The position numbers and the translations under genes were made by a program. A model generated the notes under the pieces. That model ran no database searches. It was not told the origin of the DNA and worked only from the letters and a program-made list of their open reading frames with translations. Positions 3,091 through 35,883 of a stretch of 64,000 nt of DNA are shown piece after piece. Every line of letters begins with the position of its first letter. The stretch's first letter is position 1. Origin of the DNA: Marsupella aquatica (Eukaryota; Plantae; Marchantiophyta); the NCBI GenBank assembly GCA_973895155.1, contig OZ316897.1, positions 3,566,211 through 3,630,210 on the forward strand. Direction: 5' to 3'.

Positions 3091-3284
3091 CTGAAGTGTG
3101 GGCTCAACTGAACATAATTATGTTGTAAGAAAAAAGGGAAAAAGCTGTACTCATGTTATGGATCTCATCTTCTTTGGGCCACCATGAATTATCCAAGTCT
3201 CCAGAATTACACAACCACAACAGGGAACAACCACACACAATGACAGAAGTGTGTGATTTGCGAAAATGTGGGAGTACAAGATAT

Positions 3285-7244: not shown

Positions 7245-8876
7245 TTAGAAGTGTGCACTTTCATCCCCTTCATCTATGGGAGAACCGGGAGCAAAGGGGA
7301 CAAAACCTCTCCCTCCAAAGTGAGGACGCATGTATCCATTGTCAAACTTTCGCCATACCTTATGGATCGTGGATGTTGGCGCTCTCAACAACATGCTCAA
7401 TGAGGATCGTCTCTGGACTGTTGATCGGCCTCCGTCTAAGAGCAGGGGAAATGTGATATCCCCAAAATTCCCTGATGGTTCTTTGGGTGATGAAGGCTCT
7501 GACCCATCACTCACAGCTGTTGCTGAACTGGGAAGAAGCCATTCAATTAGCGGCTTTGTTGCCATGCCAAATACAACGGTACTGACAAGCACCACTGCAA
7601 TAGTACTTGTAATTGCTGTAGCATGCTCTGGACTCTTCGTGTCACCCGATATAGTGAACTGATTGAAAGCCAGCGCAATCGACACGGCTCCACGCATCAG
7701 GCCCGCCCACCATATGATAATTTGCTGCCTGAAACTGATCTTAGTTGGTTTTCCCCTCTGTAAGTAATTCGTAAGAGCAGACAAGGGGAACACAAAACAA
7801 GCTCGGCCAAGCAGCACGAGTCCAATTAGTGTAGCGAAAACACCCAGGGTTTCTGGCCCAGTCGTCATCGTCGTTTTCCACTTATCCAAGTCCAGAGCAT
7901 CCATACCCACGTATAGAAAGATGAAAGTCTCAGCAATGAAGGACATGGTTGCGAAGGCATGCCTCGTTGTCACCTTCGAACCTTCGGTAACATTGTGCCA
8001 AGTGTAGTGAGACATGACAATACCACAGAAGAAGACAGTGAGGATTCCGCTCAAGTAGAAAAGCTCTGCAAGAATGTACGAAAGGTACGCCATGAGGGTC
8101 ATGATAGCGATCTCACGATCGGTGGAATGTCTCCCGAAGTACAAGGTCTTGATGATATAGGCACTGAGAAGTCCAGTCAATATTCCAAGTAGAGTGCTGG
8201 AGAAGAAGAGGTAAAGGAAGTTGCCGAAAATCATGAGGGCTTCCCACCCGGTGAAATCATCGAAATTAAACTTCTGTACGGCCCGAAATAGCACAACAGA
8301 GGTGGCATCGTTAACCACACCTTCTCCAAACACCAGACTGTAGAGAAGTGGAGTTCGATCCTGATTAAGAACCTGCAACACACAGACGGAGTCCGTGGCA
8401 GAGTAGATAACTCCAAGCGCCAAAAAGTCCTTGACTTGAAATGCCCCCAGTCCCAACTTTGGGAGCACGTATCTGGTTCCAGCAGAGATGATGAAGAAGG
8501 AAATGAACACCCCCACCACTCCGAACAGGATAATGGGAAGGAAATTGCGGAAGAACTGCTTCTTCTTCACCTGAAAACCAGCATTGAATATGATCGGAGG
8601 GAGAAGGTAAATGAAAAATAGCTCTTCATCGAACTGCAGAATACGGGAGCTCGCTCCTTTACTCGTGATGAGAATAATTACTCCTGTGGACAGTCCAAGG
8701 ATCAGAGCCGTGATCGACTCGTTCATCCACCGATTCTCCTCCAAGAGATGTCCCAGTACAATACAAGCACACAAAAGGGTCACAAATAAAGATATGGCAA
8801 CCACATGCATATGATCCGCGTCGTCCGCCAACCCTGCCTGCACCATGACCGAATGAAGGGAACCCCAAATCTCCAT
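7245..8876 (-). CDS. NHX: Vacuolar/endosomal Na+(K+)/H+ antiporter, class I NHX; CDS has no introns
   Basis: A 543-aa multi-TM ORF with the amiloride motif LFFIYLLPPIIFNAGF, plus GEGVVNDATS, WWAGLMRGAVS and a C-terminal WRKFDN.YMRP.FGGRGF. Confidence 0.96.
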   Translation of the reverse strand: MEIWGSLHSVMVQAGLADDADHMHVVAISLFVTLLCACIVLGHLLEENRWMNESITALILGLSTGVIILITSKGASSRILQFDEELFFIYLLPPIIFNAGFQVKKKQFFRNFLPIILFGVVGVFISFFIISAGTRYVLPKLGLGAFQVKDFLALGVIYSATDSVCVLQVLNQDRTPLLYSLVFGEGVVNDATSVVLFRAVQKFNFDDFTGWEALMIFGNFLYLFFSSTLLGILTGLLSAYIIKTLYFGRHSTDREIAIMTLMAYLSYILAELFYLSGILTVFFCGIVMSHYTWHNVTEGSKVTTRHAFATMSFIAETFIFLYVGMDALDLDKWKTTMTTGPETLGVFATLIGLVLLGRACFVFPLSALTNYLQRGKPTKISFRQQIIIWWAGLMRGAVSIALAFNQFTISGDTKSPEHATAITSTIAVVLVSTVVFGMATKPLIEWLLPSSATAVSDGSEPSSPKEPSGNFGDITFPLLLDGGRSTVQRRSSLSMLLRAPTSTIHKVWRKFDNGYMRPHFGGRGFVPFAPGSPIDEGDESAHF

Positions 8877-12505: not shown

Positions 12506-13479
12506 GTTAGAGTGCAGCACACATGCAAGTTGGCTCTTAATTCAAGAATCACAACTAAACTGTTGTCAGAAAATATCGGGCGTTGAAGACAAGAAATACC
12601 ACTAATCAGATTATCACAAAATATCGGGCGTTGATGACAAACGAAAGTATACCAAAAACAAGAGTCATCGAGAGTATAAACGAACAGTAGTTTTGGATCC
12701 GATGAGGTTTCATGAGGATTGGCAACGAATGGCGCGTGTGAGTAGATTCACAGTGCCTGTCAAAATTTGACCTGCCAGGGACTGTTGCCAAGTGGATGGT
12801 AAGAATGAATGCATGGACGATGGACCTCCACACCTCCCCCGCAAGTGACACTCATGACTCAAGCTTTGCAAGGAAGTTAGGAAGAGCTGCAAAAAGGAGT
12901 TCACCAAAGTGTGTGGACAACTCAGGCGGTTAATCGTGAGCTGATTCGGCCATTTCGGCGAGGTGTGTCCTTCAAACACTGGACAATCCTTCGATAGAGC
13001 ACTGCCCTCCTTAGGACATGGTGGTTAAAGTCGGAGGCCTTGAGCCGTCAATTCCAGAATTGACAATGTTTAGGTGGCGACTTGGAAACAGGTCCGTTCA
13101 TTTTTCCTGAGGTCCAGAGACGACCTGTCAGCTCACAGAAGATTCTCCCGAGCTGCATGAGAGGCACATTGAAGAATATTTGTCTGCAGCTGAGATACTA
13201 ATCATTGAGGGTGAGATTTCAATTTTACACGGAAGAGGGAATCCCTTCAGGTGCGGTGACATTTTGCTTCCGCAGTACGTAGATTTCAGGTCCAACCTGA
13301 CTGCTGACTGTTCATTGTCTGTCAAGGATTTTGGGTGATTGATCGTTTGATGTTTGCCACAGGTCATTGACAAATGTCTGGAATGAGCTAAGCGTGCAGA
13401 CAAGCGATTGCTCGAGCATGGAGAAGTTATATCTGTTATAGAAGAAGGCCTTTTGAGCCGTGAACCAAGAGGCATTGCC

Positions 13480-16400
13480 ATGGCGAAGCTATTCGATCCC
13501 GCTGCTGCTGCCATTCATTGTCCTTCCTCCCTTGTCTCTTCCTCTTCTTCGGCCCAGGGGAGATCGAATTTGGTCAATGGCTTTGGAGCTCAGCCAGCAA
13601 GGAAATTAAGCCAAATGCAAAGATTGGTGTCCTGTGCCTTGGTCGCTGGCACGTCTCAGGATAGCTCTGCAGGTGGGTCATATCTGCAGTGTTCCTCGAA
13701 ATTCCATTTTCGCAAATGGGGAATCATGTCTGATTTAGTCGGCCCGGTCGTCGAAAATAATTTTGCCATAATACTGGAGCAGTCTTTGTCGTTTCTAACT
13801 TCTTTCAATTTGTTCCGTGCCAAGAATCTTTACGAGAACGTTTATTTCCTTTTGTTCAGCTTTGAATCGAATTTCTGATCAGGAATGGACCAAAATTCCC
13901 GATTAACTTATAAGTTGCTTACATTTGTGAGGCATCGTGGTGCTTTGTGAGCAGAGGTAATGAACTTGGGAAGAACACATCTCCGGATTTCTAAGCTGGG
14001 GATCGGGACCTTGCAGTGGGGTGATCCTGGTTCTGGATATGGAGAACGATTCGGTGAAGAGCAACTCGCAAGCGCATTTGATGTGCTGATCAACGGTGGC
14101 ATCAACTTTTTTGATACAGCAGAAGTACGCTCTAAACCTGTTTGCCGAGAAGTATATGAACGACTCAAATGAAAAATAGTTAGAGGACGAGCTCACTCTC
14201 TCTGAGTTGTAGCAAACCAAGAGCAAATCACACCAGTAATAAAATTGCCTAACAAGATCCAACACTGTTTTTGAATTGTTCCATAAGAACACTGTTTCAG
14301 AATTGTAACCCTGTTCAGCATCATGTGCAATGAACAATTTCTCTCCTTCTTGGAAAACTGCACAGTACCGACACTTTGAACCTTCTTTACGGATACGATC
14401 TGCTTCACCTTGTCTTCAAGGGGGAAACTGAGGACATGCATTACTCACATAATAACGCTTGGATTAAATTGCCACTGTCCCCTAAGCAAAAGTGGTGGAT
14501 TCAAGTTACTAAAATAAACCAAAAATGTGCATCCAAGTTACTAAAATAAACCCAAAATGGTCTCAAAACAGTTTAAAAAGCGCTCGATTTTGTCCTCCAT
14601 AAACCTGGTGGACAATGGTGGTTGAAGGGGAATAATCGTTGCATGAGGGCTGATATCCTCATCAACGACTTTCTAGGAAATGAAGAAGAGCAACCATGGT
14701 GTGACCCCACCCAACATTTGGGCTCCCTCTGCATTGCTGTCAATGGCCACATCCGCAATTGGACGGTTTCTTCGTACTGCCCCTCCTGCACCTTTGTCGC
14801 CAACACGAGGAGGCCTGCCTCTATTCCCGGCGACACTTGTGCCCGCCTCGTAGACCCAAATTGTACTTCGCTCCTATTGTTCAATGAGTTTTCTTCTCTC
14901 TGCAGGTGCTAATGGTAAGGTGCGCTCATCATTAGATCTTTCACCATTTGCAGTAATCACCCGCCATCGCCAAAACTGCCCTCCCATTCTCCCGCAAATC
15001 TCTGCCAGAGATCCTCTCACTTCCTCCTTGAAAAGAGCTTCTCGCCAAAAGTGGCTGCTCCTCAGGGTGGATCTGTCGGGCAGTGACAGCCCCAGCCCCA
15101 GTTCCTTGGGTCCGACTGCTTACCACACATTCAAGAAAATGGCGGTTTCCTGAACGGGGACTCACATATCCATTGACTGTATGTTCCAGGTGTATGGATA
15201 TCAGGGTATTAAAAGTGGGTCCTCCTCGGAGCAATTGTTAGGAAGGTTCTTGAAACGTCCCGCTGTGCAAGGAGGAGGTGAAAACTTGTCCCCTGTAATT
15301 GCATCGAAGTTCTTCACCATCCCATGGACTAATTTTCTCGTTGGTGAGTACGAAGACACACATGCCGTATTATGGTGCTGCTTTCTCATCGTCTACGTTT
15401 ATAGTGTTATACTCACCAAAATCTCATGCGCAACCGTCATCAGAATATGCAAGCAAAAGCCACCGTGATGTAGTGTGATGATTGCTTCGACCCTGATGCG
15501 CCTCTTAGAGCGAGCTCTGTTATAGATCAATCTAAATTTTGTGCAGGGTGAGGACAGCTGCTCGTGAGAAGTTTGTCTCGTGGAATTTGTCTCGGATAGA
15601 ATTCCTCCACTTTTGATTATCTAATAATTCAATATTTTAGGGTAGCATGAATAGCCCCAGGAAAATTTTAATCTCTTTTATTGTGTTTCAGGTGGAGGGT
15701 TCAGATTAGGGCGCAAGTCTTTGCTGGCAGCAGTGAAAGAGAGCTTGAAACGACTTGACAAGAAACAGATTGATCTGTATCAAGTGAGATTTCTAACCCC
15801 TTCGGAGTTCCGAACAAAGTGACTCGAGTATAATAAGTGGCTCGTAGAAATGTGTACAAAGCACTACAACAGAACTTTTTGAATCCTACCCGAGAAAGGG
15901 CAGTGTCTTTTGAGTAATTCCTTTAGTTCATTTCCTAAGAGATGTCGGACACGACTGCGTTATCTCTGCTTTACTTTTCCAGCAGATGATAGAATAAACT
16001 GGTTAGTTGCAGCGTTAGACTGATCATATTTCGATTCTTGTCTCACAGATTCATTTCCCATTTCCCATTTTCAGCAATGCAGCCTTGATGGAAAGTTTGA
16101 AAGAGGCCGTAGAAGAAGGCCTCACAACAGCTGTAGGCGTCTCAAACTATTCAAAATATCAGGTGGACATCCTAAACATCGGACAACTTCTACATCATTT
16201 TTAGCGCCGTTGCAACTTTTTCCCTGGTATGTGCCATTGGGAAATTAAGTGCATTGAGCATGGCCAAATCGTTTGTTGATATCTAACGTTTAAATGCTGC
16301 AGTTTCTATGATTCATACTTCCAGGAACATTGTGACTGCAACAGAAGTTTGTGCGGAAGATTATTGAATCTGTACTATGTGCTTACAGATGGAAGAGGCA

Positions 16401-18079
16401 GATGACATACTAGGCAAGTATGGAATACCACTGGCTTCTAACCAAGTCCAATTCAGGTGGGCAAAGCTCTCGATACGGCAGCTATTTGTCTGTACTGGTC
16501 AGCTCGCAGTTCCATGACTAATAGTTGAACGTATCTACCGTAGATAATGGACTGATAGTACATGACGGAAAGTTGAAAGTTACAGATTCTACGTAATTAC
16601 AGTCGTCTTGACCATGTTCTGATTCATCTGCAGTTTATTCTACCAGAACCCTATTGACGACGGTCTTCTCAAATCTGCCCAGGTAAATTTCTGCGTTTTC
16701 AATTCTTGATCCTTCTCAGTGTTGCTTTGTTAGAATTTAGGCAACAAAATACGGCTGTACGAAGCAGTCCTACATAGCTCATTTCATTTCTAGCTGTGCC
16801 TTGATGAATGATACAACCTCAATATTACTTTCATTCACTTTTTGACAGGAACGAGGAATCACTGTCATAGCCTATTCACCTTTGGCAACCGGTTTGCTCA
16901 CTGAGAAGACTTTCGAGAAGAATGACAGTAAATCGACCCAGGTGAGACGGTCTCTGTCTAGTTTTGGCATACCCTCTCCTGATCCCTCCAATGTCTATTC
17001 CAACTGCACTGTATTTAGGTGTATCTAATCTGTGAAGCTTCGTGCCACGAGAACATAAGTTTGCATGTATCATTTTGGATCTAATAAAAGTACTAATGGT
17101 TTTGTGGGACCAGATTCGACCATTGCTAGAGCTGATGCAGTCAGTGGGTGCCAAACATGGAGGCAAGTCGGTCTCTCAGGTACATACTGTAATGGAATGT
17201 TAAGATTGCACTGGTCCCAGTGCTCAGTGCTCTCTATCTACGGGTTGCATGCACAGTGTTTTAAAACATTGCGGAGCATGCCTAGAAAGTTGTCCATCCT
17301 TCAACGTATGATCTTTGAAAAAACGTGATTTCGTATTGTCGGCTTGCACATCACCGCGCTTATATGGTCTGTCCATTATATGAACTCTTCATTACTTTTG
17401 CAGGTGGCTCTGAACTACTTGATTACGAAAGGTGCATTGCCAATTGCTGGGTAAGTCTGGCAACACTCTAGAGCTCTAGGAAATATCCGACACTTCAACA
17501 ATATGTGTCCCTCGTTTCTGCTGTTTAGTGGTCCCTTAAGATGAAGGGACGGAGATCCTCCATGCAGTAGCCAGTTTCGCTTCTCATCTTGCGAAAAGGG
17601 TCTGGCAGGGATATTAAGTTGAAGTTCGTGTCCAAGCTTCGTTGAACCGACTCTATCTACCCTTCAATGGAGTAGAATGTGGGATCTCTGTGATTCTTCC
17701 GGCAGCTAAAATTGTCAATTCTGACGGTAACTTAAACCCTTCCCTCTGCTCTGCAGGGTCAAAACAGTAGAACAAGCGAAGGCACATACGGAAACATTGG
17801 GCTGGCGCTTGACAGACAACGAAGGTACGCACTCCTGACATCAGAGAACAATATAACTACTTTATAATTTGGGCTGTCCGTATGGTACTGGAACCAACGA
17901 TTTGCGTAACCAGTCTCCGGGAGCAATGCGTGCCTTTGTTCCATTTTGGGAGAGTTTTGGCAATTTTTTGAAATAATGAGATTTCAACAAGTTTTGTGGT
18001 TAGCGATGGAGTCCTAAACGATTTTCGCCGGCTTGCAGTCGAAGCACTAGAGGAGACAAGGAGAGCTTTGAAGTTATAG
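13480..18079 (+). CDS. Aldo-keto reductase with probable plastid transit peptide (pyridoxal-reductase-related plant AKR); 12 exons: 13480-13672, 13955-14124, 15190-15343, 15692-15783, 16049-16162, 16389-16456, 16634-16682, 16849-16941, 17114-17179, 17404-17450, 17757-17824, 18039-18079
   Basis: AKR motifs LGIGTLQWG, GINFFDTAEVYG, IASKF, SLKRL..IDLYQIH, AVGVSNY, SNQVQFS, IAYSPLATG and SQVALNYL. All junctions are GT-AG with consistent phase, and the N-terminus is Ser-rich. Confidence 0.93.
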
Positions 18080-20610: not shown

Positions 20611-23600
20611 TCTCCCGGTTAGGCGTTTTTTTCTGTTGCATTTTGATATAATTATAACACTTTTTATAACGTTTTATGACGTATATTCGTCCAGTCGGAA
20701 GTTGTCACGTGCCTGGGATCTTCAGATCTTTTTCCGCTTGACCTTGTACTCTATAGAAGCTCGTCTCCCCTAACTAGGCTCTCGGTCAGCAGTCTCAAAC
20801 ATCCTCTTCACTACAAATCAATGCCTGCCACTCGCATTTCGGCCATCTTCATATCCTGATCCCCGAAGTCTTTCAAAAAACTGGAGCTGGATTGTATCTC
20901 GGAGTCTTCATTGCTGTGTCTGCATTGCTGTGTAACTCGAGCGATGTGCGCGCAGCTTTGGACATTCTCTAGGTTAGATCAGATAAGTTTCTCAAGAATC
21001 CTCCTGGGAGAGAAGCTTCTCGATGTTTTGAAATTGGTTCAATTTCACGAGGAATCTGCGCACGAGCAATGCAGTTCCAGTTATATGGCGTAATCATATA
21101 GCACACTGTATTAGTTCGACAGAAATTGGACCAATAATTCGATTCGGAGGAAAAGCCGACGATGCCGAATTCACAGTCAGCTCCATTGCAGAGTGAAGTG
21201 GATGTCGTCGTCATTGGGGCTGGCATGGCTGGGATCTACATGCTCTATAAGCTCAGGGAGCTTGGCCTCAACGCCAGGGCATTTGAGGCAGCCGATGATA
21301 TCGGTGGTACTTGGTATTGGAATCGATACCCCGGGGCGCGATGCGACATCCAAAGCATGGAGTATTGCTATTCCTTCTCAAAGGAGCTGAACCAGGAATG
21401 GACCTGGAGTGAACGCTATTCGAGCCAAGCTGAGATTCTCCGGTACTTGAATTATGTCGCCGATCGTTTCGACCTGCGGCGTTATATCACCTTAAAGGCG
21501 CGTGTGACATCGATGGTTTACGACGATGATAAGTACCACTGGCTTGTCAGGACCGACACAAATGAAGCCGTGACAGCGCGTTTCTGTATCTCGGCCGTAG
21601 GCTGCTTATCTCAGCCTCTCATCCCAAACATTCCAGGTACGGAGAGTTTCACAATAGCAATGTACAATTGACGATGAATCATTTGAACACGAAACGAAGA
21701 TTAGATGCCACGCCATTACAAGAAATTGACGTGTCAACTTTACACTACAAGTTCTCGACCGCAAGTTTATGATCAGCATACTTACTGGAAAGCTTTCGAG
21801 GAAACTAGAAGATTGTAGTAGTTGTTTGATCTTCACTGGAATATCCTACTGTAGTTGTTTTATCTCTATGAACGAAGCATGCTGAAAATTCGAGGAAAAT
21901 AAAAGTGCAAGGAAACTTTATCAGTTGCGCTTATGTCCGTGCAATATAAATGTCCTCGAGGTTACCAAATACTTATTTGATTTACACAAAGGTATCCTAG
22001 TTGTTTGATCTCTGCCGATGGCAGCATTGCAAAACTTTGCGAATTCACTGAAATTCTCCCGTTCTCATCAGGGTTGGACAAGTTTCCTGCCGGATCTGTT
22101 TACCACACCGGTCGCTGGCCACATGAACCGGTAGACTTCACCGGTCAGCGGGTAGGTATTATTGGGACCGGATCGTCAGGTGTGCAGGCTATCCCAGAAC
22201 TCGCGAAGCAAGCGGCCGAGTTGTTTGTATTCCAACGCACGCCCAATCATGCGGTACCCGCGAACAACTATAAGTTTTCCGACAGCTACTCAAAGCAAAT
22301 GAAGCAACGCTACGAGGAACTGTGGAAACAGTGGGTCCGCACTCCTACTGGCGGGAACAACAACATTCCTGTCAAATCAGCGCTTGACGTCCCAGAGCAG
22401 GAACGCGAAATCATCTATGAGAGCAGCTGGACTCACGGCGGGTTCGACATTTTGTACACTTTCAACGACATCAGCACAAATCAGGCAGCAAACGACACCG
22501 TAGCGGACTTCGTGCGGCGGAAGATCCGCCAACTCGTTCCAGACCAGGCAGTAGCCGAGCAGTTGGTTCCTGCAGAGCATCCGTTGGGAACCAAGCGGCT
22601 CTGTCTCACTTACGGTTACTACGAAACTTTCAATCGGCCAAACGTCCATCTAGTCAGCGCTAAGGTCTCTGTTTTTTTAAATTCTTTCAATTCTGTCTTT
22701 GATTATCGGCATGCTCTCTTGTCTTAATGGGTCTTAATGGATTGAAACCAGACGATCGGAGGATAGACCATAAATAATGTTAAATTGAATTGTATTGAAC
22801 ATCCCTTTGACCCTAAATTTACTTCATTTCAACTCAGTTCAGTTCTGCTCAATTCAGTCCAGTTTTCAATTCAATTCAATTCAGGTTGAGCCTATCGTCG
22901 AGATCGAAAGAAGTGGAGTGCGCACCTCAAAGGAGCTGTACCCTCTCGACTGCCTGATTTTTGCCACCGGCTATGACGCCGTCACCGGCGCGCTGCTGGC
23001 CATTGACATTCGCGGCCGGGGCGGTCGCTCGCTGCGAGATGAGTGGGACAACGGAGCAGCTGCATACCTCGGCGTGGCCATAGCAGAGTTTCCCAATCTG
23101 TTCGTGATTACAGGCCCGGGCAGTCCTTCTATACTCTACAACGTTGCTCGCCCAATCGAGCAGCATGTGGACTGGATCGCCAACTGTCTTGCCTATATGG
23201 CGAAGCATCACATGGCGGTCATTGAACCGAGCAAAGAGGCTCAGACTGCCTGGATACATCTCGTCTCCCAACTGGCCCAAAAGACACTGTACCCAAAATG
23301 TAAATCTTGGTATAACGGCGACAACGTCGATGGCAAACCGCGCAGGTTCTTGCCTTTCATCGGGTTCTCTCACTACCAGGACGAAATCGACAAGGTGGCC
23401 AGCAACAACTATGAGGGTTTTGTATTGAGCCCCGAAGAGGTTCGGGCATGATCAAAGATCTGAGCTATGCAGTGAAGCCGCTGCTGGTAAGCCCGGATAG
23501 CCACTCTTGCTAAGAAGGTCAATGCGCTAAGGGTGTCGTTACAAGACGTCGTGTACTTGTGACTCTTCCCACCAAAGCAAACTAGACTCAACAGCCACTT

Positions 23601-24820
23601 ATTGTTCTGAAGATAGACTGAGGATTTAGAACGATTCTCTACACTGCCTCTAGGACTAGGGATTGTTCTAAAGACCGACGGAGTACTTGTGCATATACTC
23701 TGCTCTAGCTACTTTACTCTACTCTCGGGCCACTAGCTGCTGATCTAGGTAGTAACTGAAGACTTTTGAATCCATAACAAGTACCTAGGTAGTAACTGAA
23801 GACTTTTGAATCCATAACAAGTCATCAGATTCTGACTTACCTCAAGAGAGGGCTGGTGAGATGTGGAGCTGCTCAATTCTGGGAATGTTGGGAAATCGAG
23901 ATCAGATTCACTCAGTTGTTTGTTGTTGGTTGGTCACAGCACGAATCCACGAATTTGAGCTACAGTTCAGCACGACCGGTTGTCCGGACAATTCATACAG
24001 CAGCAAATAGACCCAGGCCATTCCCCCATCTTCCATAGCCTATTTACATTTTAATGAGATATATTTCCACCTAATTCATTCAATGCATTCAATTCGTTGG
24101 ATACCCTAAATCCCATAGATGCTCTTCCCGAGTTTCGAAGCGAAAGATTGCAAACTTATAGACAATCCGACGATGTGGTTTTGGAGGGCAGAAGCCTCCA
24201 GTTTGTGCATTGCACAGCTAGTGAAAAGCATTAATGCCCAGATTGAAGGATTCTTTCCATAAATTTCAGGTGCTTGACTGTTAAAGCACATGGCGTCGAC
24301 CTCAGATCGATACACGACGAGTGTCACAAACCAATCCATAAATTTGTAAATTTATAAATTTTCAGAAGAGCTCAGCCTGGCGTTTGTACAGGGAGCTTTC
24401 CAGGGAAGTGACCCTTCTGAGAACTTGTTTTCTTGCTCTTTCCATAAAAGAATTCGATGCAGACGAGGGACAAGAGTGTGCGAGTGTAGAGTCTTGCTCT
24501 GTTCAAGTGCTTAACACCCCATAATTATCTCCAATAGGGAGTCTCGAACTCTCTGTTTTGGGCAAGGTTGTGTTCTGGAACTACACTGATGGACACAAAA
24601 ACAATTATCCGCACACTTGTGACCGCAGACCACAACTGGTACTTCCAGGGTTGCGGGCAATGTTGTTGTCCAGAAGTACAATGGTGGACATAAAAACTTG
24701 CGACCGCAGACCAAAAGTGGTACTTCCAGGCTAGGGGTCTTTTCACGGACCTGGAGGTTTGAGACACACTAATACCTAAACTTCCCTGGCAGACAATTGG
24801 AGCTGTCACTATTTGGATTC
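20611..24820 (+). repeat. Segmental duplication, copy 1 (BVMO plus flanks)
   Basis: Colinear near-identity with 31311-35861, from tctcccggtt to cactatttggattc. Confidence 0.95.
21162..23451 (+). CDS. Type I Baeyer-Villiger monooxygenase (FAD/NADPH; phenylacetone/cyclohexanone monooxygenase family), copy 1; exons 21162-21636, 22072-22664, 22885-23451 (544 aa)
   Basis: Rossmann motifs VIGAGMAG and IIGTGSSG, BVMO motif GGTWYWNRYPGARCD, fingerprint FPAGSVYHTGRWP, QRTP, catalytic TKRL, ATGYD and SWYNGDNV.GKPR. Splicing gives 1635 nt in frame. Confidence 0.95.
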
Positions 24821-27800
24821 AGCTACGGCTCAACGGTTTGATCGCAGCGAGGCGGTCGTTTTGAGCCCGGGTTTGGCACTTGATGCGGAGTGAAGGCGAC
24901 GCGACGGAAGCTTTTACAGTGCTGGAGTTGCAGACGGTGCCGTTGTGATTCGGCAACATATCCCGTCGGTAACTCGTTGTTTTCTCATTGGAAACGGCGG
25001 CGAGGTGTGTAACCCGGGCTTTGTTTTCTGCTTTGGGTGCCAATTGTTTTTTAGGGCTTAAAGGGGTTTAACCCCTTGTGTGTGTTTATACACACATTCG
25101 TATTGTATAAACACATGTTTTTACCCCCTCCTCCCCGTCACCCCGTTTTCTCCCCGGCCCTGCGTTTAGTATTCGCGCCCCCCCCTGCACCCCGTTTTTA
25201 CGGCACTCCGCAGCGCCGGCCGGCGCAAAAGTTGCCGCCCGGCAGTTGCCCTTACGAACGCCCCGGCCAGGCCCTCCCCGCTTGCCCGACGCCCCTCCCG
25301 CTGCCTCTCGCCGGCAGCCTGCCTCGCGAGTCGCGGCAGCAACTCATTTTTTGCCCCCGGCCCGGCCCTGCAACTATACACGGCTGCGTATGCAGCCGCC
25401 CGATACTGCCTGTATTTCCCTCTACAGCCCGGCCATACACCCTTCATGTGCCCCGGCCACTATACGGGGTATTTTGGGATTGAAGGGACTTAAGGGCCCC
25501 CTTTAAGCCCCATTTTTAGCCTTTTTCTCCTCCTTATTGTTTCCTCTTGTGCCGGGACCTGCCTCCTTCCGTTTTAACCGCTCCGATAGGGGGAACGGTC
25601 CCCTGTGAGACCTGTCCCACTGTGCGGGAATATTCCCAAAAAACAGAGAGCTGTTTTTTGGCCGTCCGACAAAGATTCTATTTGCCGAACGGAAACTTTT
25701 TTGGTTCTTTTTTGGCGAGGTCATAGCCACTAGAGTTAGCAACGCGGTGCACCAATCACATCGCAATTTTAACGACTGGTTATACTTGGTATTTTGGTTA
25801 TTCTCTGAGGTGGTCAAAATGGGGAGTTTCCCAAGGTTTTACCCACCTCGACCAAAATTTGAATAACTTTTCCGTCGAATTTTGATTTTGATTTTGGCTT
25901 TCAGTATTGGACTCCTAGCTTTGTGGGCTACGCGGCGGTGTTGAGTTTTGAGTTTTATTAGAAGTTTTGAGAAAAGATGTTTTTTCATGATTGTTTCATA
26001 TGAGTGACTCGGACGATACTAAAAGAATTGGCGTCGGTGGAGCTTCAAGATTGCGACGGTCAGATGGAGAGTCTGAGGAGGAGCTGCTACCATTTGAGGA
26101 GGAACAAGTATCACCGGTACAATCACCGGTGTGGCGTGCAGTGGAGGAAGTTGTACTATTACCAGAGCTATCGGTAGTGGGGAAGAAAAGGGAGATAGCT
26201 AGATTTGGAGGATTGAAGTTTGAGGTGGAAGAGTACCATGGTCGTACTGATTACTTGTTGTGGGAGAAGCAAGTCAAGGGTGTTCTTTGGGCCATGGGCT
26301 TAGCTCATCTGCTTTCTTCGCGAGAGAGAATGATGGAGAGGAGGAGATTTCTGTGAAGCAGTGGAGATAGGAGCAGGTGATTGCTGTCAATGCAATGATG
26401 CTTTATCTCAAGCCGCACATCATCAAGAAGTTGGATGATTATGCGGATTGCACGTCACTGTTCAAGGCTCTAAGAGAGAAGTACTACCGGGAAGATGCGT
26501 CAAACCGGCTGTACAAGAAGTCTCTCTTGATGAGCCTGAGGCTCAAGGAAGGGAGCAAACTACAGGATCACCTAGATGAGTTTGATAGTCTAGCGGTGGA
26601 TCTGTCAAACCTAGGTAAGGGAGTTGAAGATGAGGATAAGGCCTTGCTTCTGCTAAGCTCCTTATTGCCATCTTATCAGGGCTTGAAACAGGTTCTCTTG
26701 TACAGAGATCTGAAGTCCATTTCGTATAATGAGATGGTGAGCTCTTTACTGTCTGATGATGCTCAGAAGAAGCTAGGTCAAGCACAGACAGCATCTTCTT
26801 CTGGCATTGCGCTGAACGTGAACCGGGGAAGACCAACGCATCGCACGAATGGGCAAAACAGGTTTAGATCTACATCACTGGGGAGATCTAAATCCAGAGG
26901 GAAATCACAAGAGAGGAAGCCTCTTGCATGTTGGAGATGTGGCAAGTCTGGCCATATAAAAAGGGATTGTCGAGTAAAGGACCCTACTACATCAGCTAAC
27001 GCGGCGTCGAGCTTGCATGAGGTAGATTTTCTCGATGATGATGACATATTGTGATGCCAAGGTTATGCTCTCAACGTAGTGTCAAATCCAGGTAGTGATG
27101 ACTGGATTCTAGATAGTGCATATACTTTTCACATTTGCTCTAGGAGAGATTTTTTCAGTTCTTACACGGTTTCCAACGATTCAGTGTTGATGGGAAATGG
27201 AATCTCATGTCAAGTTGTGGACTTGGATCTGTTAGATTTCAGATGTTTGATGGTGTTATGAGAACGTTGAGGAATGTGAGACATATTCCCAGCATGATGA
27301 AAATCTCATTTCACTTGGAGTTTTAGAAGCGAATGGCCATCAATGGAGTTCTGCTAATGGTGTCCTTCAGGTTTCAACTAGTACTAAAGTTGTATTGAAG
27401 GGAAAGAGACATAACAATCTATACATTTTGGAGGGCAGTGTAGTCTATGATGAAGCCAATGTAACCTTATCTCATGAGGAGATAGCCTGGTTGTGGCACT
27501 TCCGTTTGGGCCACATGAGTGAAAAAGGTTTGGCTATTCTTCAAAAAAAAAATTACTTTCTAATTGGCAATCTTGTAAATTGGAATTCTATGAGCATTGT
27601 GTGTTTGGGAAGCAGCACAAGAAACCCTTCGGAGTTGGAACTCACACCAGCAAGGAGGTATTTGAGTATGTACATAGTGATGTGTGGGGTCCAGCCCCTA
27701 CTCCCTCACATTCTGGACGGTTATACTATGTCACGTTCATAGACTATTACTCAAGGTATATGTGGATATACTTTCTACACAGTAAATCTGATGTTTTTAC

Positions 27801-30800
27801 CACTTTTAAGGAGTGGAAAATCCAAGTTAAAAATCAGACTGGTAATAAGGTGAGATATCTTCGATTGGATAACGACGGTAAATACAGTTCCGGGGAATTT
27901 GGAATGTATTGTAAGGAGCAGGGGATTACCCGCCATCTCACAACAAGTTATACTCCTCAGCAGAATGGTGTTTTTGAAAGACTCAACCGAACATTATTGG
28001 ATCGCTCGAGGAGTATGTTGAGTCAATCATGCTTACCACATGAGTTTTGGGCTAAAGCCGTCAATACTACAGCTTATTTGGTAAATTTTTCTCCATCCAG
28101 TTCTATTAGATTCAAGACGCCATTTGAAATGAGGTACGGGCGTTCAATAGATTACTCACATCTGAGGATTTTTGAATGTGATGCTTATGTGCTTACACCT
28201 TCCCAACTTTGATCCAAGCTGGAGTCCAAGTCAAAGAAGTGCATTTTCCTTGGCTATCAGAAAGGTGTGAAGGGTTATAGGTTATGGGATCCAGTAACCT
28301 GTAAACTAATTGTCAGTAGAGATGTGTCCTTTAATGAGTCCACATCATCATAGGAGGGGGAGACTCCCATACTGACAAGGGGAAATCTCTCATCCCGGAC
28401 CAGGTTGAGGGGGAGATTAGTCATGATGATGTTCATGACAGGAAAGATGGAGAAGCTCCGGGCTTGGAGCTGGTTCCTGTGATGGAACAAGAGGAGCAAA
28501 TTGTTGTTGAGGTACCTCAAATTCGGCCAGCAACAGCAGCAGATCAGCCTGAGTCATCTACTAGAAGAACTTCTAGTCGTTCTACTAAAGCTCCTACCAG
28601 GTATGGTCAATGGGCAGACTCATCTAAGCTAGATGATATTGACATTGCACCTGATGAAGATGATATGGCTTTGATCTTAGAAGAAGGAGAGCCTTCTTCG
28701 TACAGTGAAGCTTGTGCTTCAGAGCATAAGCATGAGTGGAATGCAACAATGCAGAGGGAGTTACAATCTTTGAGTGACAACAAGACATGGAAGTTGGTGG
28801 AGCTTCCAAGAGGTCAGCAAGTGGTGGACAGCAAATGAATTTACAAGTTGAAGGAGAGTCCTTCAGAGGGTGGAGATAAGATCTACAAGGCAAGGCTTGT
28901 TGCCAAGTGATTCACTAAGGAGAAAGGAGTGGATTACAATGAGGTCTTTTCACCGGTGGCTAAGTATTCCACAATTTGGATCTTGTGTTAGCTTGTTGTG
29001 TTTTTTGGTCTGGTGATGGATCAGATGGATGTTGTTACTGCATTTCTATATGGCAACTTGGAAGAGATGATCTTCATGAGATAGCCAGTAGGCTTTATAA
29101 AGAAGGGTCAAGAGAACTTAGTTTGCAAATCATTGCTCCAGTCCTTGTATGGATTGAAGCAATCTCCCAGACAATGGAACAAGCGGTTTGATGATTTCAT
29201 ATTTGCTCAAGGTTTTACAAGGATGGTGTATGATCTTTGTGTGTATACGAAATCAGTCAAGAATGATGTATTTGGTTTCATCATTCTGGTTATCTATGTG
29301 GATGACATGCTGATTGTGGCTAAAGATCAATCTGAGGTTGACAAACTCAAGGCAAAATTGAGTTCTGAATTCAAAATGAAGGATCTTGGTAAGGCCAAGA
29401 AGATCTTAGGGATGGATATTTTTAGGAACTCTGATACTGGACAGTTGTGCTTTCAGAGTCAAGGCCAGTATACGAGGAAAGTACTTGCTCGATTCAACAT
29501 GGAAAACTGTAAGCCAGTGAGTATTCCTTTAGCTTCACACTTCAAGTTATCATCGGCTTTCTCTCCTACGGATGCTGTGGAGACAGGTCTGATGGCTAAG
29601 ATTCCTTATGAGAAGGCAATAGGCAGTCTGATGTATTTGATGACTTGTACTAGGCCTGACTTGGCCCTAGCGATGGGCAAGGTTAGCAGATTCATGTCAA
29701 ATCCAGGGAAGGTACATTGGGAAGCTATGAAATGGATTCTCAGGTATCTGAAGGGAACACAGGACTATGGATTACTATTTGATACGAAATCAGATAGAAC
29801 GTTAGTTGGCTATGTAAATTCTGACTATGGAGGCTGTCTAGATACAAGGAGGTCTACAACTGGGTTTGTATTTACTTTTGGAGGAGAATGTATTAGTTAG
29901 AAATCTACCTTGCAGAAGTGTATATCTCAATCTACTATAGAAGCAGAGTATGTTGCAGCAGCAGAAACAGCAAAGGAAGCAATTTGGTTGGACAAGTTGA
30001 ATAGGGAGATGGGTTTAGAGCATGGCAAAATGTCTCTAAACTGTGATAGTCAGAGTGCTCTTCACTTAGCTGCTAACCAGGTGATGAATAGCAGGGTGAA
30101 GCACATTGATATCAGGTACCATTTTATCAGACAAGCAGTGTCTAATAAAACTTTTGAGCTAGTCAAGATTGATGGAAAGCTCAATCCTGCTGATGCCTTT
30201 ACCAAAGTGATTCATTTGGAGAGTTTCTCAAGACACCGTGCTACTTTGCAGGTTTTGCAATTGTAGTGCAAGTACAGTTATTTAGCAATGTGTGACTATT
30301 TGTATATGGATTACTCATTCCAGTTTGGCTACGGCTTAGTTCTAGTTAACCCTTAGTTAACCCTTGTGGTTTTTAGGGGGAGACCTGTTTAGGTGATTGT
30401 CTAGAACTTCCCGTTGAGGATTCCATATGGTAGCATTTAGTCCAGTCCCCAAGACAAGAGTCAAGGGGGAGTTTGTTAGATATTGCTCTAGTCTTGTGAC
30501 TCATGAGCTAACCACAGTTAGGCTAACTCAGGTTAGTACCTAGCTAATGTTAGCGGTAGTGTTGTTGTGTATTAAGCCAGGGCTGATGCCAGACCTTGGT
30601 GGAACTTAGGTTCATTGTTACGGAGCTAGTTGAGAGATAGGGAGAGCTTGTGCTGTGGATGCTTGGTATGGCCGTTCGGCCTAGAATGCAGTAAAGCTCT
30701 TGTGTGTTCCCGTGGACGTAGCCTCATGTGGAGGTGAACCACGTATCTCTCTGTGTCGACTCTTGTACGCTGGATGGTTCATGGGCTTGCAGTTGCGAAT

Positions 30801-30817
30801 GTCGTCTATGCTTAACA
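24821..30817 (+). mobile_element. Ty1/copia LTR retrotransposon, inactive, lacking its 5' LTR and PBS; gag-pol remnants ~26000-30266; 3' LTR 30474-30817
   Basis: Gag CWRCGKSGHIKRDC, protease WILDSA, integrase HSDVWG..PQQNG..ERLNRT, RT LYGLKQ..YVDDML and RNase H KHIDIRYHF, with many stops and frameshifts. PPT AAGGGGGAG is followed by TGTTA...TAACA. Confidence 0.93.
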
Positions 30818-31890
30818 AGAACACCCGCACGTCTAAAAGGTCCACCGCTGCCTAGCGCCAAAGGTGATGTCTCAAAGGCACCCCCTCCGGTCAGATCCCC
30901 AAGTGGCTACACCGCAACGAGCTCCTCCAGGTCACGATCCGATCCCAGCAAAGAGCCGGGAGGACAAACACCAGGCCCTGGTCCAGGCCGGAGCCAGAAG
31001 CCGACCAGCCAAGAAGGCTCCCAGGTACCAAAGCCGCTCTACTAAACAGAGCCGAGGAACCAGGATGCCGACCTCCAAAGGACCAAAGCCAGCGCGCCGA
31101 GCCGATGAGGACGATCACAAAGCACCAAGAGAGAAGCACCAAAATTCAAAATTCAAAGGTCGGGGGCCAGCAGCCCGCACAATCACCCGGGCCCCTCGAA
31201 AAGGGGCAGAGTAGATGCGCGGGTCCATCCAAGTTTGGTTTGTCCATGTGGGCTTGATAGAGAACCTATCCCATCCGGGCTTTATGTTCTTTTATGACGT
31301 CTATGGAGTATCTCCCGGTTAAGCTTTTCTTTTGCACTTTAATATAATTGTAACATCGTTTTATGACGTATATGCATCCAGTCGGAAGTTGTCACGTGCC
31401 TGAGATCTTCAGATCTTTTCGGCTTGAGTGCTTGACCTTACATGTCTATAGAAGCACGTCTCCCCTACTAGGCTCTTCGGTCAGCGGTCACAAACATCTT
31501 CTTCACTAGAAATCAATGCCTTCCACTCGCATTTCGGCGATCTTCATATCCTGATCCCCGAAGTCTTTCAAAATACTGAAGCTGGATTGTATCTCGGAGT
31601 CTTCGGATGCTCACATGCAGTTCCTTGTGTCTGCATTTCCTTGTGTCTGCATTGCTGTGTAACTCGAACGACGTAAGCGCAGTTTTTTGGACATTCTCTA
31701 GATTAGATCAGATAAATTTGTCAAGAATCCTCCTGGGAGAGAAGCTTCTCGATGTTTTGAAATTGGTTCAATTTCACGAGGAAACTACGCATGAGGAACG
31801 CAGTTCCAGTTATATGGCGTAATCATATAGCACACTGTACTAGTTCGACAGAAATTGGACCAAAAATTCGATTCGGAGGAAAAGCCCACG

Positions 31891-34163
31891 ATGCCGAATT
31901 CACAATTAGCTCCATTGCAGAGTGAAGTGGATGTCGTCGTCATCGGGGCTGGCATGGCTGGGATCTACATGCTCTATAAGCTCAGGGAGCTTGGCCTCAA
32001 CGCCAGGGCATTTGAGGCAGCCGATGATATCGGTGGTACTTGGTATTGGAATCGATACCCCGGGGCGCGATGCGACATCCAAAGCATGGAGTATTGCTAT
32101 TCCTTCTCAAAGGAGCTGAACCAGGAATGGACCTGGAGTGAACGCTATTCGAGCCAAGCTGAAATTCTCCGGTACTTGAATTATGTCGCCGATCGTTTCG
32201 ACCTGCGGCGTTATATCACCTTAAAGGCGCGTGTGACATCGATGGTTTACGACGATGATAAGTACCACTGGCTTGTCAGGACCGACACAAATGAAGCCGT
32301 GACAGCGCGTTTCTGTATCTCGGCCGTAGGCTGCTTATCTCAGCCTCTCATCCCAAACATTCCAGGTACGGAGAGTTTCACAATAGCAATGTACAATTGA
32401 CGATGAATCATTTGAACACGAAACGAAGATTAGATGCCACGCCATTACAAGAAATTGACGTGTCAACTTTACACTACAAGTTTTCGACAGCAAGTTTATG
32501 TCAGCATACTTACTGGAAAGCTTTCGAGGAAACTAGAAGTTTGTAGTAGTTGTTTGATCTTCACTGGAATATCCTACTGTAGTTGTTTTATCTCTATGAA
32601 CCAAGCATGCTGAAAATTCGAGGAAAATAAAAGTGCAAGGAAACTTTATCAGTTGCGCTTATGTCCGTGCAATATAAATGTCCTCGAGGTTACCAAATAC
32701 TTATTTGATTTCCACAAAGGTATCCTAGTTGTTTGATCTCTGCCGATGGAAGCATTGCAAAACTTTGCGAATTCACTGAAATTCTCCCGTTCTCATCAGG
32801 GTTGGACAAGTTTCCTGCCGGATCTGTCTACCACACCGGTCGCTGGCCACATGAACCGGTAGACTTCACCGGTCAGCGGGTAGGCATTATTGGGACCGGA
32901 TCGTCAGGTGTGCAGGCTATCCCAGAGCTCGCGAAGCAAGCGGCCGAGTTGTTTGTATTCCAACGCACGCCCAATCATGCGGTACCCGCGAACAACTATA
33001 AGTTTTCCGACAGCTACTCAAAGCAAATTAAGCAACGCTACGAGGAATTGTGGAAACAGTGGGTCCGCAGTCCCTCTGGCGGGAACAACAACATTCCTGT
33101 CAAATCAGCGCTTGACGTCCCAGAGCAGGAACGCGAAATCGTCTATGAGAGCAGCTGGACCCACGGCGGGTTCGACATTTTGAGCACTTTCAACGACATC
33201 ATCACAAATCAGGCAGCAAACGACACCGCAGCGGACTTCGTGCGGCGGAAGATCCGCGAACTCGTTCTAGACCCGACAGTAGCCGAGCAGTTGGTTCCTG
33301 GAGAGCACCCGTTCGGAACCAAGCGGCTCTGTCTCACTTACGGTTACTACGAAACTTTCAATCGGCCAAACGTCCATCTAGTCAGCGCTAAGGTCTCTGT
33401 TATCAAAATTCTTTCAATTCTGTCTTTGATTATCGGCATGTTCTCTTGTCTTAATGGATTGAGACAAGACGATCGGAGGCTAGAACATAAATAATGTTAA
33501 ATTGAATTGTATTGAACATCACTTTGACCCTGAATTTACCTCATTTCAACTCAATTCAGTTCCGCTCAATTCAGTCCAATTTTCAATTCAATTCAGGTTG
33601 AGCCTATCGTCGAGATCGAAAAAAGTGGAGTGCGCACCTCAAAGGAGCTGTACCCTCTCGACTGCCTGATTTTGGCCACCGGCTATGACGCCGTTACCGG
33701 CGCGCTGCTGGCCATTGACATCTGCGGCCGAGGCGGTCGCTCGCTGCGAGATGAGTGGGACAACGGAGCAGCTGCATACCTCGGCGTGGCCATAGCAGAG
33801 TTTCCCAATCTGTTCGTGATTACAGGCCCGGGCAGTCCTTCTATACTCTACAACGTTGCTCGCCCAATCGAGCAGCATGTGGACTGGATCGCCAACTGTC
33901 TTGCCTATATGGCGAAGCATCACATGGCGGTCATTGAACCGAGCAAAGAGGCTCAGACTGCCTGGATACATCTCGTCTCCCAACTGGCCCAACAGACACT
34001 GTTCCCAAAATGTAAATCTTGGTATAACGGCGACAACGTCAATGGCAAACCGCGCAGGTTCTTGCCTTTCATCGGGTTCTCTCACTATCAGGACGAAATC
34101 GACAAGGTGGCCAGCAACAACTATGAGGGTTTTGTATTGAGCCCCGAAGAGGTTCGGGCATGA
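31891..34163 (+). CDS. Type I Baeyer-Villiger monooxygenase, copy 2; exons 31891-32365, 32800-33392, 33597-34163 (544 aa)
   Basis: Same motifs, exon sizes and splice sites as copy 1. About 20 amino-acid differences by manual count and no disabling lesion seen. Confidence 0.95.
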
Positions 34164-35295
34164 TCAAAGATCTGAGCTATGCAGTGAAGCCGCTGCTGGT
34201 AAGCCCGGATAGCCACTCTTGCTAAGAAGGTCAATGCGCTAAGGGTGTCGTTACAAGACGTCGTGTATTTGTGACTCTTCCCACCAAAGCAAACTACACT
34301 CAACAACCACTTATTGTTCTGAAGATAGACTGAGGATTTAGAACGATTCTCTACTCTGCTCTAGGACTAGGGATTGTTCTAACGACCGACGGAGTACTTG
34401 TGCATATACTCTGCTCTAGCTACTTTACTCTACTCTCGGGCCACTAGCTGCTGATCTAGGTAGTAACTGAAGACTTTTGAATCCATAACAAGTATCTAGG
34501 TTGTACCTGAAGACTTTCGAATCCATAACAAGTCATCAGATTCTGATTTACCTCACGAGAGGGCTGGTGAGATGTGGAGCTGCTCAATTCTGGGAATGTT
34601 GGGAAATCGAGATCAGATTCACTCAGTTGTTTGTTGTTGGTTGGTCACAGCACGAATCCACGAATTTGAGCTACAGTTCAGCACGACCGGTTGTCCGGAC
34701 AATTCATACAGCAGCAAATAGACCCAGGCCATTCCCCCATCTTCCATAGCCTATTTACATTTTAATGATCTACTTCCACCTAATTCATTCAATGCATTCA
34801 ATTCGTTGGATACCCTAAATCCCATAGATGCTCTTCCCGAGTTTCGAAGCGAAAGATTGCAAACTTATAGACAATCCGACGATGTGGTTTCGGAGGGCAG
34901 AAGCCTCCAGTTTGTGCATTGCACAGCTAGTGAAAAGCATTAATGCCCAGATTGAAGGATTCTTTCCATAAATTTCAGGTGCTTGACTGTTAAAGCACAT
35001 GGCGTCGACCTTAGATCGATACACGACGAGTGTCACAAACCAATCCATAAATTTGTAAATTTTCAGAAGAGCTCAGCCTGGCGTTTGTACAGGGAGCTTT
35101 CCAGGGAAGTGACCCTTCTGAGAACTTGTTTTCTTGCTCTTTCCATAAAAGAATTCAATGCAGACGAGGGACAAGAGTGTGCGAGTGTAGAGTCTTGCTC
35201 TGTTCAAGTGCTTAACACCCCATAATTATCTCCAATAGGGAGTCTCGAACTCTCTGTTTTGCCTCCGGTCAAGGGCAAGGATGTGTTCCGGAACT

Positions 35296-35607
35296 AGGGG
35301 GACTCAAATATCGGGCCGGGAGAGTTTTGCAGCCGCCCGAGTTAGATTTGGGTGGACACGGCCTGAAAATGTGCGGGAGACCCTTAGGCTAGCCCGCACA
35401 CTCTGACCGCAGCATTTCGGAAACACCTGGGAACAGACTCCCGTAGTCACTTTCTCCCCCCCCCCCTCCCCGGAGTGTCACATTACGGACGTAAAAAAAT
35501 TGCGGTGACAAAGATTCCTTCCCCCGTTATACTTGCTCATAGGGCACCTCACGGGCAAAAGTAACCTCCCGGGAACACACATGACAGCCCCATATTTGAG
35601 ACCCCCT
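35296..35607. mobile_element. MITE, 312 bp, AGGGGG...CCCCCT termini, 3-bp TSD ACT
   Basis: Imperfect TIRs AGGGGGACTCAAATATCGGGC / GCCCCATATTTGAGACCCCCT. The paralogous empty site ggaACTacactg is at ~24577-24588. Confidence 0.85.
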
Positions 35608-35883
35608 ACTACACTGATGGACACAAAAACAATTATCCGCACACTTGTGACCGCAGACCACAACTGGTACTTCCAGGGTTGCGGGCAATGTTGTTTTCCG
35701 GAAGTACAATGGCGGACATAAAAACTATTGTCGCACACTTGCGACCGCAGACCAAAAGTGGTACTTCCAGGCTAGGGGTCTTTTCACGGACCTGGAGGTT
35801 TAAGACACTCTAATGCCTAAACTTCCCTGGCAGACAATTGGAGCTGTCACTATTTGGATTCTTTGGAAAACCTGTTGCCAACG

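Follow-up and report, generated by a model that had tools for sequence, protein, structure and literature searches.

Baeyer-Villiger monooxygenases (BVMOs) are known from a small number of plants. The BVMO of the moss Physcomitrium patens, PpBVMO, is a bryophyte nuclear gene that belongs to the PAMO/STMO-type clade and is thought to be bacterial in origin (Beneventi et al. 2013 via PMC4498894, PMC13557801). Mascotti et al. 2015 (PMC4498894) placed this Physcomitrella enzyme in a clade with PAMO, Rhodococcus enzymes and sequences from Bradyrhizobium, Sorangium, Emiliania and Adineta. A 2026 survey in Plant Journal, which covered 78 genomes of Viridiplantae, found BVMOs in P. patens, in ferns (13 sequences) and in Chloranthus, the last of these being fungal-like and a possible contaminant; the distribution in plants is described as sporadic, and several independent horizontal gene transfers (HGTs) are proposed (PMC13557801). 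According to the text of this survey, PpBVMO is ~62% identical to its best bacterial match, from Blastococcus, and ~64% identical to the protein of Ceratodon, while no BVMO was present in three liverworts, Marchantia, Ricciocarpos and Lunularia, all of which are complex thalloids, and no liverwort BVMO is mentioned in that text (PMC13557801). Here we describe a pair of BVMO genes, termed BVMO-A and BVMO-B, in a 64-kb stretch of the liverwort Marsupella aquatica (contig OZ316897.1, positions 3,566,211 to 3,630,210), the whole of which is referred to as the window. The pair is best read as real nuclear genes of PAMO type that arose by HGT from a bacterium, followed by intron gain and tandem duplication, a reading to which we assign a probability of about 0.75.

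Two intron-containing genes of PAMO type

Both genes are located on the forward (+) strand, BVMO-A at 21162-23451 and BVMO-B at 31891-34163, and each consists of three exons and two introns. The coding sequence is 1635 nt in either gene, equivalent to 544 codons and a stop codon, and no stops or frameshifts were detected in any of the six in-frame exon pieces. All of the introns (4/4) start with GT and end with AG, intron 1 being in phase 1 and intron 2 in phase 0. An initial annotation of this DNA had proposed two intact genes for 544-aa proteins with two introns each, and both reading frames and all four pairs of splice sites were confirmed. The exon-exon junctions at both intron positions are AG|G, which is the usual proto-splice site. 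At the protein level, the junctions of intron 1 (...IPNIP-G-LDKF...) and intron 2 (...HLVSAK|VEPIVEI...) are collinear with PAMO and are read without a break in a metagenome fragment, P0001, described below. The window contains no N gaps and no BVMO copies other than these two, and a search of Rfam gave no match within it.

A difference in GC and CpG content between exons and introns had also been claimed. This difference was measurable, as the BVMO exons have a GC content of 0.54, a third-position value (GC3) of 0.61-0.65 and an observed/expected CpG ratio of ~1.0 and the introns have a GC content of 0.37, but it does not amount to a foreign signature. The host genes of the window show the same trend, with GC3 values of 0.46-0.58 and CpG ratios of 0.67-0.91 (0.30-0.56 in the retroelements), and the contrast is, therefore, an ordinary trait of host genes. 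The composition of the BVMO genes is largely host-like and only slightly GC-richer than that of their neighbors.

Homology searches were performed exon by exon, with each exon as a separate query. In Pfam, exons 1 and 2 matched folds of class B flavoprotein monooxygenases. Among solved structures, the best match of each exon was PAMO of Thermobifida fusca (1w4x), with E values of 1e-59, 3e-63 and 6e-53 that exclude a chance match, and the three exons together span PAMO residues 15-541. Steroid monooxygenase, OTEMO and cyclohexanone monooxygenases were the next matches. The steroid monooxygenase (STMO) of Rhodococcus rhodochrous (4aos), a bacterial steroid-degrading enzyme, ranked second among the solved relatives of exons 1 and 2 (E values of 4e-57 and 4e-56) and third for exon 3 (2e-46), where 6jdk scored slightly higher; in all cases it scored below PAMO. 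A solved fungal BVMO, 5j7x, gave E values of 1e-31 to 1e-34 across the exons, versus 1e-53 to 1e-63 for PAMO.

The liverwort protein and PAMO (T. fusca locus L004) are of the same length class (544 and 542 aa) and are 54% identical over 521 aligned residues, with a single 1-residue insertion that is located in exon 2 of the liverwort gene. The two-residue active-site bulge, GPGSPSILYNV in the liverwort, aligns without gaps to GPGSPSALSNM of PAMO (PAMO 441-444), and the segment from P440 to N445 is equal in length in the two proteins. A nearly gap-free alignment to PAMO that included this bulge had been put forward in the initial annotation and was borne out. The N-terminus is also collinear with PAMO, with 18 residues ahead of the first GxGxxG, in agreement with the earlier remark that there is no obvious targeting peptide.

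Both copies carry the N-terminal Rossmann motif for binding of FAD (GxGxxG; GAGMAG at exon 1 residue 19) and the central motif for NADPH (GxGxxG/A; GTGSSG in exon 2), as well as the [FL]ATGYD motif. The catalytic Arg in GTKR, at exon 2 codon 175, is equivalent to R337 of PAMO and the catalytic Asp in GARCD to D66; equivalents of PAMO R217, T218, K336 and W501 are also retained. A second BVMO motif, reportedly defined by Riebel et al. in 2012 as [A/G]GxWxxxx[F/Y]P[G/M]xxxD, is matched in exon 1 of both copies by GGTWYWNRYPGARCD. The BVMO fingerprint, which Fraaije et al. are said to have formulated in 2002 as FxGxxxHxxxW[P/D], is not matched in its strict form. The liverwort sequence reads F-P-A-G-S-V-Y-H-T-G-R-W-P (PAGSVYHTGRWP), in which the 1-residue insertion places a P at the F site while the G, H, W and P of the fingerprint stay in register. 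Among 473 homologues, the F site was occupied by F in 454, Y in 15, I in 2, S in 1 and V in 1 and by P in none; F is thus not invariant in the family, but P has no precedent in this sample. An earlier statement that all cofactor and catalytic motifs were present, therefore, stands for the Rossmann motifs, the Asp and Arg residues and the second motif but fails for the strict fingerprint, where PAMO has F. Further differences from PAMO affect the pocket (Q152C, A442I, S444Y, M446V, I339C and V54T), and the liverwort gene differs in being eukaryotic and nuclear, with two introns. On the basis of these comparisons, the predicted proteins are PAMO-type type I BVMOs.

Relatives and phylogenetic position

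When 1.84 billion cluster representatives were scanned by HMMER with exon 2, P0001 was the best match, at 61% identity, and all other matches were at or below 53%. An exon 2 word search of proteins of 108-345 aa similarly gave nothing beyond P0001 (61%), with the rest at or below ~57%. A profile search of proteins of 300-950 aa was performed with a 544-aa Bhargavaea BVMO as the backbone and the three exons as separate rows; the best full-length proteins were 50-56.5% identical to the exons among the matches listed. Bacillota relatives of the backbone dominated these matches, and neither a plant protein nor the protein of the window itself was among those listed. No annotated plant protein above ~57% identity was found in the exon 2 word and profile searches, which covered bryophyte proteomes. 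As a positive control, a search with an NHX-type exchanger encoded in the window returned sequences of Calypogeia fissa, Marchantia paleacea, Riccia, several Sphagnum, Ceratodon and Physcomitrium from the same database, together with transcript-like Logan and JGI bryophyte contigs. An exact look-up of the NHX ORF gave no entry, so that the annotation of the present genome is not part of the collection.

Scanning of the exons against one genome per species for 185,579 prokaryotic species gave identities of 44-55% for exon 2 and 50-55% across the three exons, with matches spread over Actinomycetota (T. fusca, Actinoallomurus and Nocardia), Burkholderiales, Alphaproteobacteria, Chloroflexota, Binatota and Myxococcota. 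Matches in JGI metagenomes, among which P0001 did not appear, fell within the same limits. The best named matches were 50-56% identical and were distributed across Actinomycetota, Pseudomonadota, Bacillota, Chloroflexota and Binatota. Cluster look-ups for the closest unnamed proteins gave bacterial or metagenomic sources only, and all of the clusters retrieved from the ESM Atlas were BVMO-like and either bacterial or unnamed. Two candidates, P0078 and P0098, each with identities of 53-60% in two stretches, were rejected as frameshifted high-GC bacterial sequences. The profile-search matches also included fusions of a BVMO to an alpha/beta-hydrolase of 868-879 aa (P0323, P0339 and P0379); bacterial BVMOs are often paired with or fused to such hydrolases.

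No relative closer than P0001 was found: this 277-aa protein from a 1082-bp contig of IMG sample 3300059835 is 61% identical over exon 2 and was the only match above 57% identity in the searches made. Its open reading frame (ORF) starts and ends within the contig, exactly at the limits of BVMO homology, and passes straight through both of the liverwort intron sites, as the gene model predicts for the spliced junctions. The first 18 residues are nonhomologous, with an abundance of F, L, I, K and Y, a bias that is what AT-rich (intron) DNA would encode; in contrast, the frameshifted P0078 and P0098 have out-of-frame tails rich in Arg, Pro and Ala. To judge from these features, P0001 probably represents a single exon from a eukaryotic gene whose introns lie at other positions, and this would imply an intronless ancestor and separate gains of introns. 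It differs from the liverwort protein in carrying the canonical fingerprint, F-E-G, and in having its apparent exon ends elsewhere. A possible link of the P0001 sample to bryophyte-like NHX contigs from JGI was rejected, as these contigs were derived from three other samples.

Phylogenetic trees were built with each exon as its own row, the exons not being joined. In a quick tree of 94 rows, exons 2 and 3 formed a clade with P0001 (SH-aLRT 99), and exon 1 was adjacent in a basal polytomy. A careful maximum likelihood (ML) tree of 61 rows was then obtained with LG+C20+F+G4 and three divergent BVMOs as the outgroup, the bootstrap of which had not fully settled. All of the window rows and P0001 were located within a 43-row clade (UFBoot 99/SH-aLRT 98) that includes PAMO; all other members of this clade are bacterial or metagenomic, and the clade is itself nested within further bacterial clades (96/83, 84/81, 91/89 and 100/96). 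This nesting indicates that the gene is of bacterial type. Exons 2 and 3 and P0001 again formed a clade (99/100) with a stem of 0.8, and PAMO, although within the same well-supported clade, was not a specific sister of the liverwort gene. An ML tree had been proposed in the initial annotation as a check on descent: the exon rows were indeed nested among bacterial BVMOs, but with no algal, fungal or bryophyte rows in the tree, vertical descent is only weakened.

Chromosomal context and tandem duplication

The order of three host genes upstream of the BVMO pair, RBR - NHX - AKR, is identical on contig CBCUJL010000054.1 (3.1 Mb) of the C. fissa assembly GCA_965154635.1, where a 21.6-kb locus is collinear with positions 193-17478 of the window at 72-81% nucleotide identity (blastn). 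The NHX protein of the window is 92% identical to that of C. fissa, 80% to that of Marchantia paleacea, 76% to that of Riccia and ~75% to those of Sphagnum. These sequences place the host among the leafy liverworts (order Jungermanniales), close to C. fissa but distinct from that species. The BVMO pair sits in a plant nuclear chromosome beside vertically inherited genes, and simple contamination is ruled out because BVMO-A starts 3.7 kb downstream of the syntenic aldo-keto reductase (AKR) gene. The earlier assignment of the pair to a plant genome was, thus, upheld by the introns, the N-free window and the collinear AKR, NHX and RBR neighbors. The link between AKR and BVMO is one of adjacency only, AKR being a long-standing host gene with a syntenic counterpart in C. 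fissa. Coordinates of the features are given in Table 1.

Table 1. Features of the window discussed in the text
Feature	Position	Strand	Description
BVMO-A exon 1	21162..21636	+	Start codon, FAD-binding GAGMAG, second BVMO motif GGTWYWNRYPGARCD, Asp equivalent to PAMO D66
BVMO-A intron 1	21637..22071	+	435 nt, GT-AG, phase 1, GC ~0.37
BVMO-A exon 2	22072..22664	+	Variant fingerprint PAGSVYHTGRWP, NADPH-binding GTGSSG, helical subdomain, GTKR (Arg = PAMO R337)
BVMO-A intron 2	22665..22884	+	220 nt, GT-AG, phase 0
BVMO-A exon 3	22885..23451	+	FATGYD, PAMO-type bulge GPGSPSILYNV, Trp equivalent to PAMO W501, stop codon
BVMO-B exon 1	31891..32365	+	4 nt differences from A
BVMO-B exon 2	32800..33392	+	21 nt/13 aa differences from A; aa changes all within exon codons 76-171
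BVMO-B exon 3	33597..34163	+	10 nt/6 aa differences from A
Duplicated block A	20670..24820	+	5' flank, gene and 3' flank; 95.5% identical to block B (blastn)
Duplicated block B	31357..35861	+	blastn partner of block A
Ty1/copia-type coding remnant	25991..30266	+	gag, zinc knuckle, integrase, reverse transcriptase; between blocks A and B
Second Ty1/copia-type element	39297-43236	-	Flanks copy B together with the first element
AKR, multi-exon host gene	13299..17478	+	3.7 kb upstream of BVMO-A; syntenic in C. fissa
NHX-type Na+/H+ exchanger, intronless host gene	7245..8876	-	C. fissa homologue at locus L161, 10001-11632
RVT_3 + RING/IBR (RBR-type E3) host gene	193..3054	+	Syntenic in C. fissa, locus L161, 15483-18274

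Each BVMO gene is part of a duplicated block, and divergence between the blocks is uneven: 9.3% in the 5' flank, 0.8% in exon 1, 1.4% in intron 1, 3.5% in exon 2, 6.9% in intron 2, 1.8% in exon 3 and ~2% in the 3' flank. The 5' flanks, which contain the promoter regions, are the most diverged part. This mosaic divergence suggests gene-conversion tracts over parts of the unit and, for this reason, the overall dS of 0.039 between BVMO-A and BVMO-B does not provide a clean date. Amino acid differences are concentrated in exon 2, with 13 of the 20 falling in codons 76-171, equivalent to PAMO 238-333 in the helical subdomain (binomial p = 4e-6). The pN/pS ratio was 0.97 in these codons, 0 in the rest of exon 2, 0.09 in exon 1 and 0.43 overall. 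The changes in the predicted helical subdomain could reflect selection that is relaxed or diversifying, or simply a tract that conversion did not reach.

No long terminal repeat (LTR) pair was found by blastn around the copia remnant between the blocks, and neither terminal inverted repeats nor an LTR pair was found around the duplicated blocks or the remnant. An origin by transposon capture is, therefore, unsupported. A perfect 38-nt tandem duplication with a spacing of 40 is present at 23745-23822 in the 3' flank of copy A, and copy B apparently has a single unit at 34456-34496. Short dispersed direct repeats of 32-45 nt (...AGATTCTGGCTAAT...) occur at 18839-20023, between AKR and block A, and may be remnants of a small repeat family.

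Two features of the neighboring host genes were also observed. The NHX1-type exchanger is an uninterrupted ORF of 543 codons in both the window and C. fissa; NHX1 genes of seed plants have about a dozen introns, and the intronless liverwort gene may be an old retrogene or the result of wholesale intron loss in liverworts. The RNase H-like RVT_3 domain and the RING-IBR domains are combined in one gene, which is annotated as a single 525-aa product in C. fissa.

Origin and significance of the liverwort BVMO genes

These data are consistent with a series of events in which a bacterial gene would have entered the plant lineage by horizontal transfer and subsequently gained two spliceosomal introns at AG|G sites, its composition drifting toward that of the host. 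A tandem duplication would have followed, with the copies being partly homogenized by gene conversion and split by a copia-type insertion. The initial annotation had put forward transfer, domestication, intron gain and duplication; the bacterial type, integration, introns and duplication are now supported by the tree, the synteny, the GT-AG boundaries and the blocks. Going by the conserved residues, the enzyme would probably be cytosolic and would follow the textbook BVMO cycle, in which the ketone carbonyl is attacked, the Criegee intermediate is stabilized by the Arg equivalent to PAMO R337 and rearrangement yields an ester or lactone. The pocket differs from that of PAMO, and the differences between BVMO-A and BVMO-B are almost confined to the helical subdomain, which shapes access of the substrate; a small aromatic or terpenoid ketone of liverwort specialized metabolism would be a guess at this substrate.

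Several observations weigh against a bacterial transfer followed by domestication of two working copies. The tree does not resolve the donor, owing to the polytomy within the 43-row clade and the long stem of 0.8, and it places exon 1 apart from exons 2 and 3 in a polytomy, albeit without conflict. Its rows exclude PpBVMO and the Ceratodon, fern, algal, Emiliania and Adineta BVMOs, so that a shared eukaryotic or bryophyte clade is possible. A lack of annotated homologues in plant proteomes is not equivalent to absence from the genomes, and the comparison with C. fissa ends ~3 kb short of the syntenic BVMO site, the multi-exon AKR gene being cut by the end of the locus. The divergence between BVMO-A and BVMO-B is too small and too mosaic to prove selection on both copies, and the fingerprint insertion, seen in 0/473 homologues, might affect the function of the predicted enzymes.

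Contamination, or an assembly chimera joining bacterial DNA to a plant contig, has precedents in the BVMOs of Hordeum, Pantholops and possibly Chloranthus, which have been judged to be contaminants (PMC4498894, PMC13557801), but is very improbable here: each copy has two GT-AG introns of plant-like low GC content, the two copies and their 4-kb flanks have diverged, copia elements are present on both sides, a syntenic host AKR lies 3.7 kb away without N gaps and the best bacterial identity is just ~56%. We also consider it rather improbable that the genes are real but nonfunctional, either as young unprocessed pseudogenes or as enzymes crippled by the fingerprint insertion. The replacement of the fingerprint F by P through an insertion without parallel among 473 homologues, the pN/pS ratio of ~1 in the helical subdomain and the failure of the exon 2 word search and the profile search to find a transcript-derived homologue would fit such a loss of function. 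Both 1635-nt frames and the splice sites of four introns are, however, intact, the catalytic and cofactor residues are all retained despite the long stem branch, the core of exon 2 is free of nonsynonymous changes, exon 1 has a pN/pS ratio of 0.09 and F is also absent from the fingerprint site in 19 of the 473 accepted homologues.

Other explanations concern the route of acquisition. An old acquisition shared with mosses seems unlikely. In this scenario, a single acquisition by an early bryophyte or land plant would have given rise both to the PpBVMO lineage of Physcomitrium and Ceratodon and, as its orthologue, to the liverwort gene, which would have evolved fast and been lost from most liverworts. 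PpBVMO belongs to the same PAMO/STMO-type clade (PMC4498894) and, according to the plant survey, two moss BVMOs are only ~64% identical, so that an identity of 55-60% between moss and liverwort would be possible (PMC13557801); the largely host-like composition, the long stem in the careful tree and the resemblance of the nearest relative, P0001 (61%), to a eukaryotic exon also fit an old gene. Yet PpBVMO, whose host is a moss rather than a leafy liverwort, did not outrank bacterial proteins in the profile search, and no Physcomitrium, Ceratodon or Sphagnum protein scored above generic bacterial ones even though their proteomes were covered. Furthermore, no BVMO was reported from Marchantia, Ricciocarpos or Lunularia (PMC13557801), and P0001 is unbroken at both intron sites, leaving shared ancient introns unsupported. 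Transfer from another eukaryote, such as a fungus, alga or other bryophyte whose own copy had come from bacteria and whose lineage P0001 would represent, is improbable in our estimation. The sister position of P0001 (99/100), the ends of its ORF inside the 1082-bp contig on both sides where homology stops and its F/L/I/K/Y-rich nonhomologous N-terminus, as an AT-rich intron would give, point in this direction; against this, the eukaryotic nature of P0001 is deduced from a protein sequence, the named relatives are all bacterial and the solved fungal BVMO 5j7x scores far below PAMO. Within the preferred reading of a bacterial transfer, a more specific version is possible and is held tentatively, at distinctly less than even odds: the transfer would be confined to a narrow leafy-liverwort lineage, absent from the AKR-flanking site of C. 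fissa and independent of those in mosses and ferns, and the gene would form, with P0001, an unrecognized eukaryotic PAMO-type branch whose introns were gained separately after transfer.

The BVMO class itself is not new to plants, as had been stated initially, since the moss PpBVMO is on record (PMC4498894; PMC13557801). The 13 fern BVMOs and the Chloranthus BVMO resemble the liverwort pair in being plant-genome BVMOs attributed to independent HGT; unlike the PAMO-like liverwort gene, the fern proteins are 25-35% identical to PpBVMO and find their best matches in Acidobacteriota (PMC13557801). Dong et al. 2025 (PMC12513842) report ~229 HGT genes for each bryophyte; many of these are species-specific, and such genes have few introns and are located in LTR-rich regions. 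The few introns and LTR-rich setting match the BVMO locus, and BVMOs are unmentioned in the main text of that paper (PMC12513842). The locus does not represent a new kind of system, as bryophytes commonly carry HGT genes (PMC12513842) and a PAMO-type BVMO has already been characterized from a moss; what is new is a BVMO in a plant group, the liverworts, for which the cited papers carry no earlier report of the enzyme.

The pair adds an anchored, intron-bearing and duplicated PAMO-type BVMO for a further plant lineage, the leafy liverworts. As the flanking genes are syntenic with those of a sequenced relative, the locus is well suited to dating the gain of introns by a transferred gene. The altered bulge and pocket residues may be of interest for biocatalysis. 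Unusual lactones and esters of terpenoid and aromatic type abound in leafy liverworts; to our knowledge, no BVMO has been tied to this chemistry. If the transfer was indeed confined to a narrow lineage, the locus would combine a datable intron gain with a neofunctionalizing duplication in an HGT gene, possibly recruited to terpenoid or aromatic lactone chemistry.

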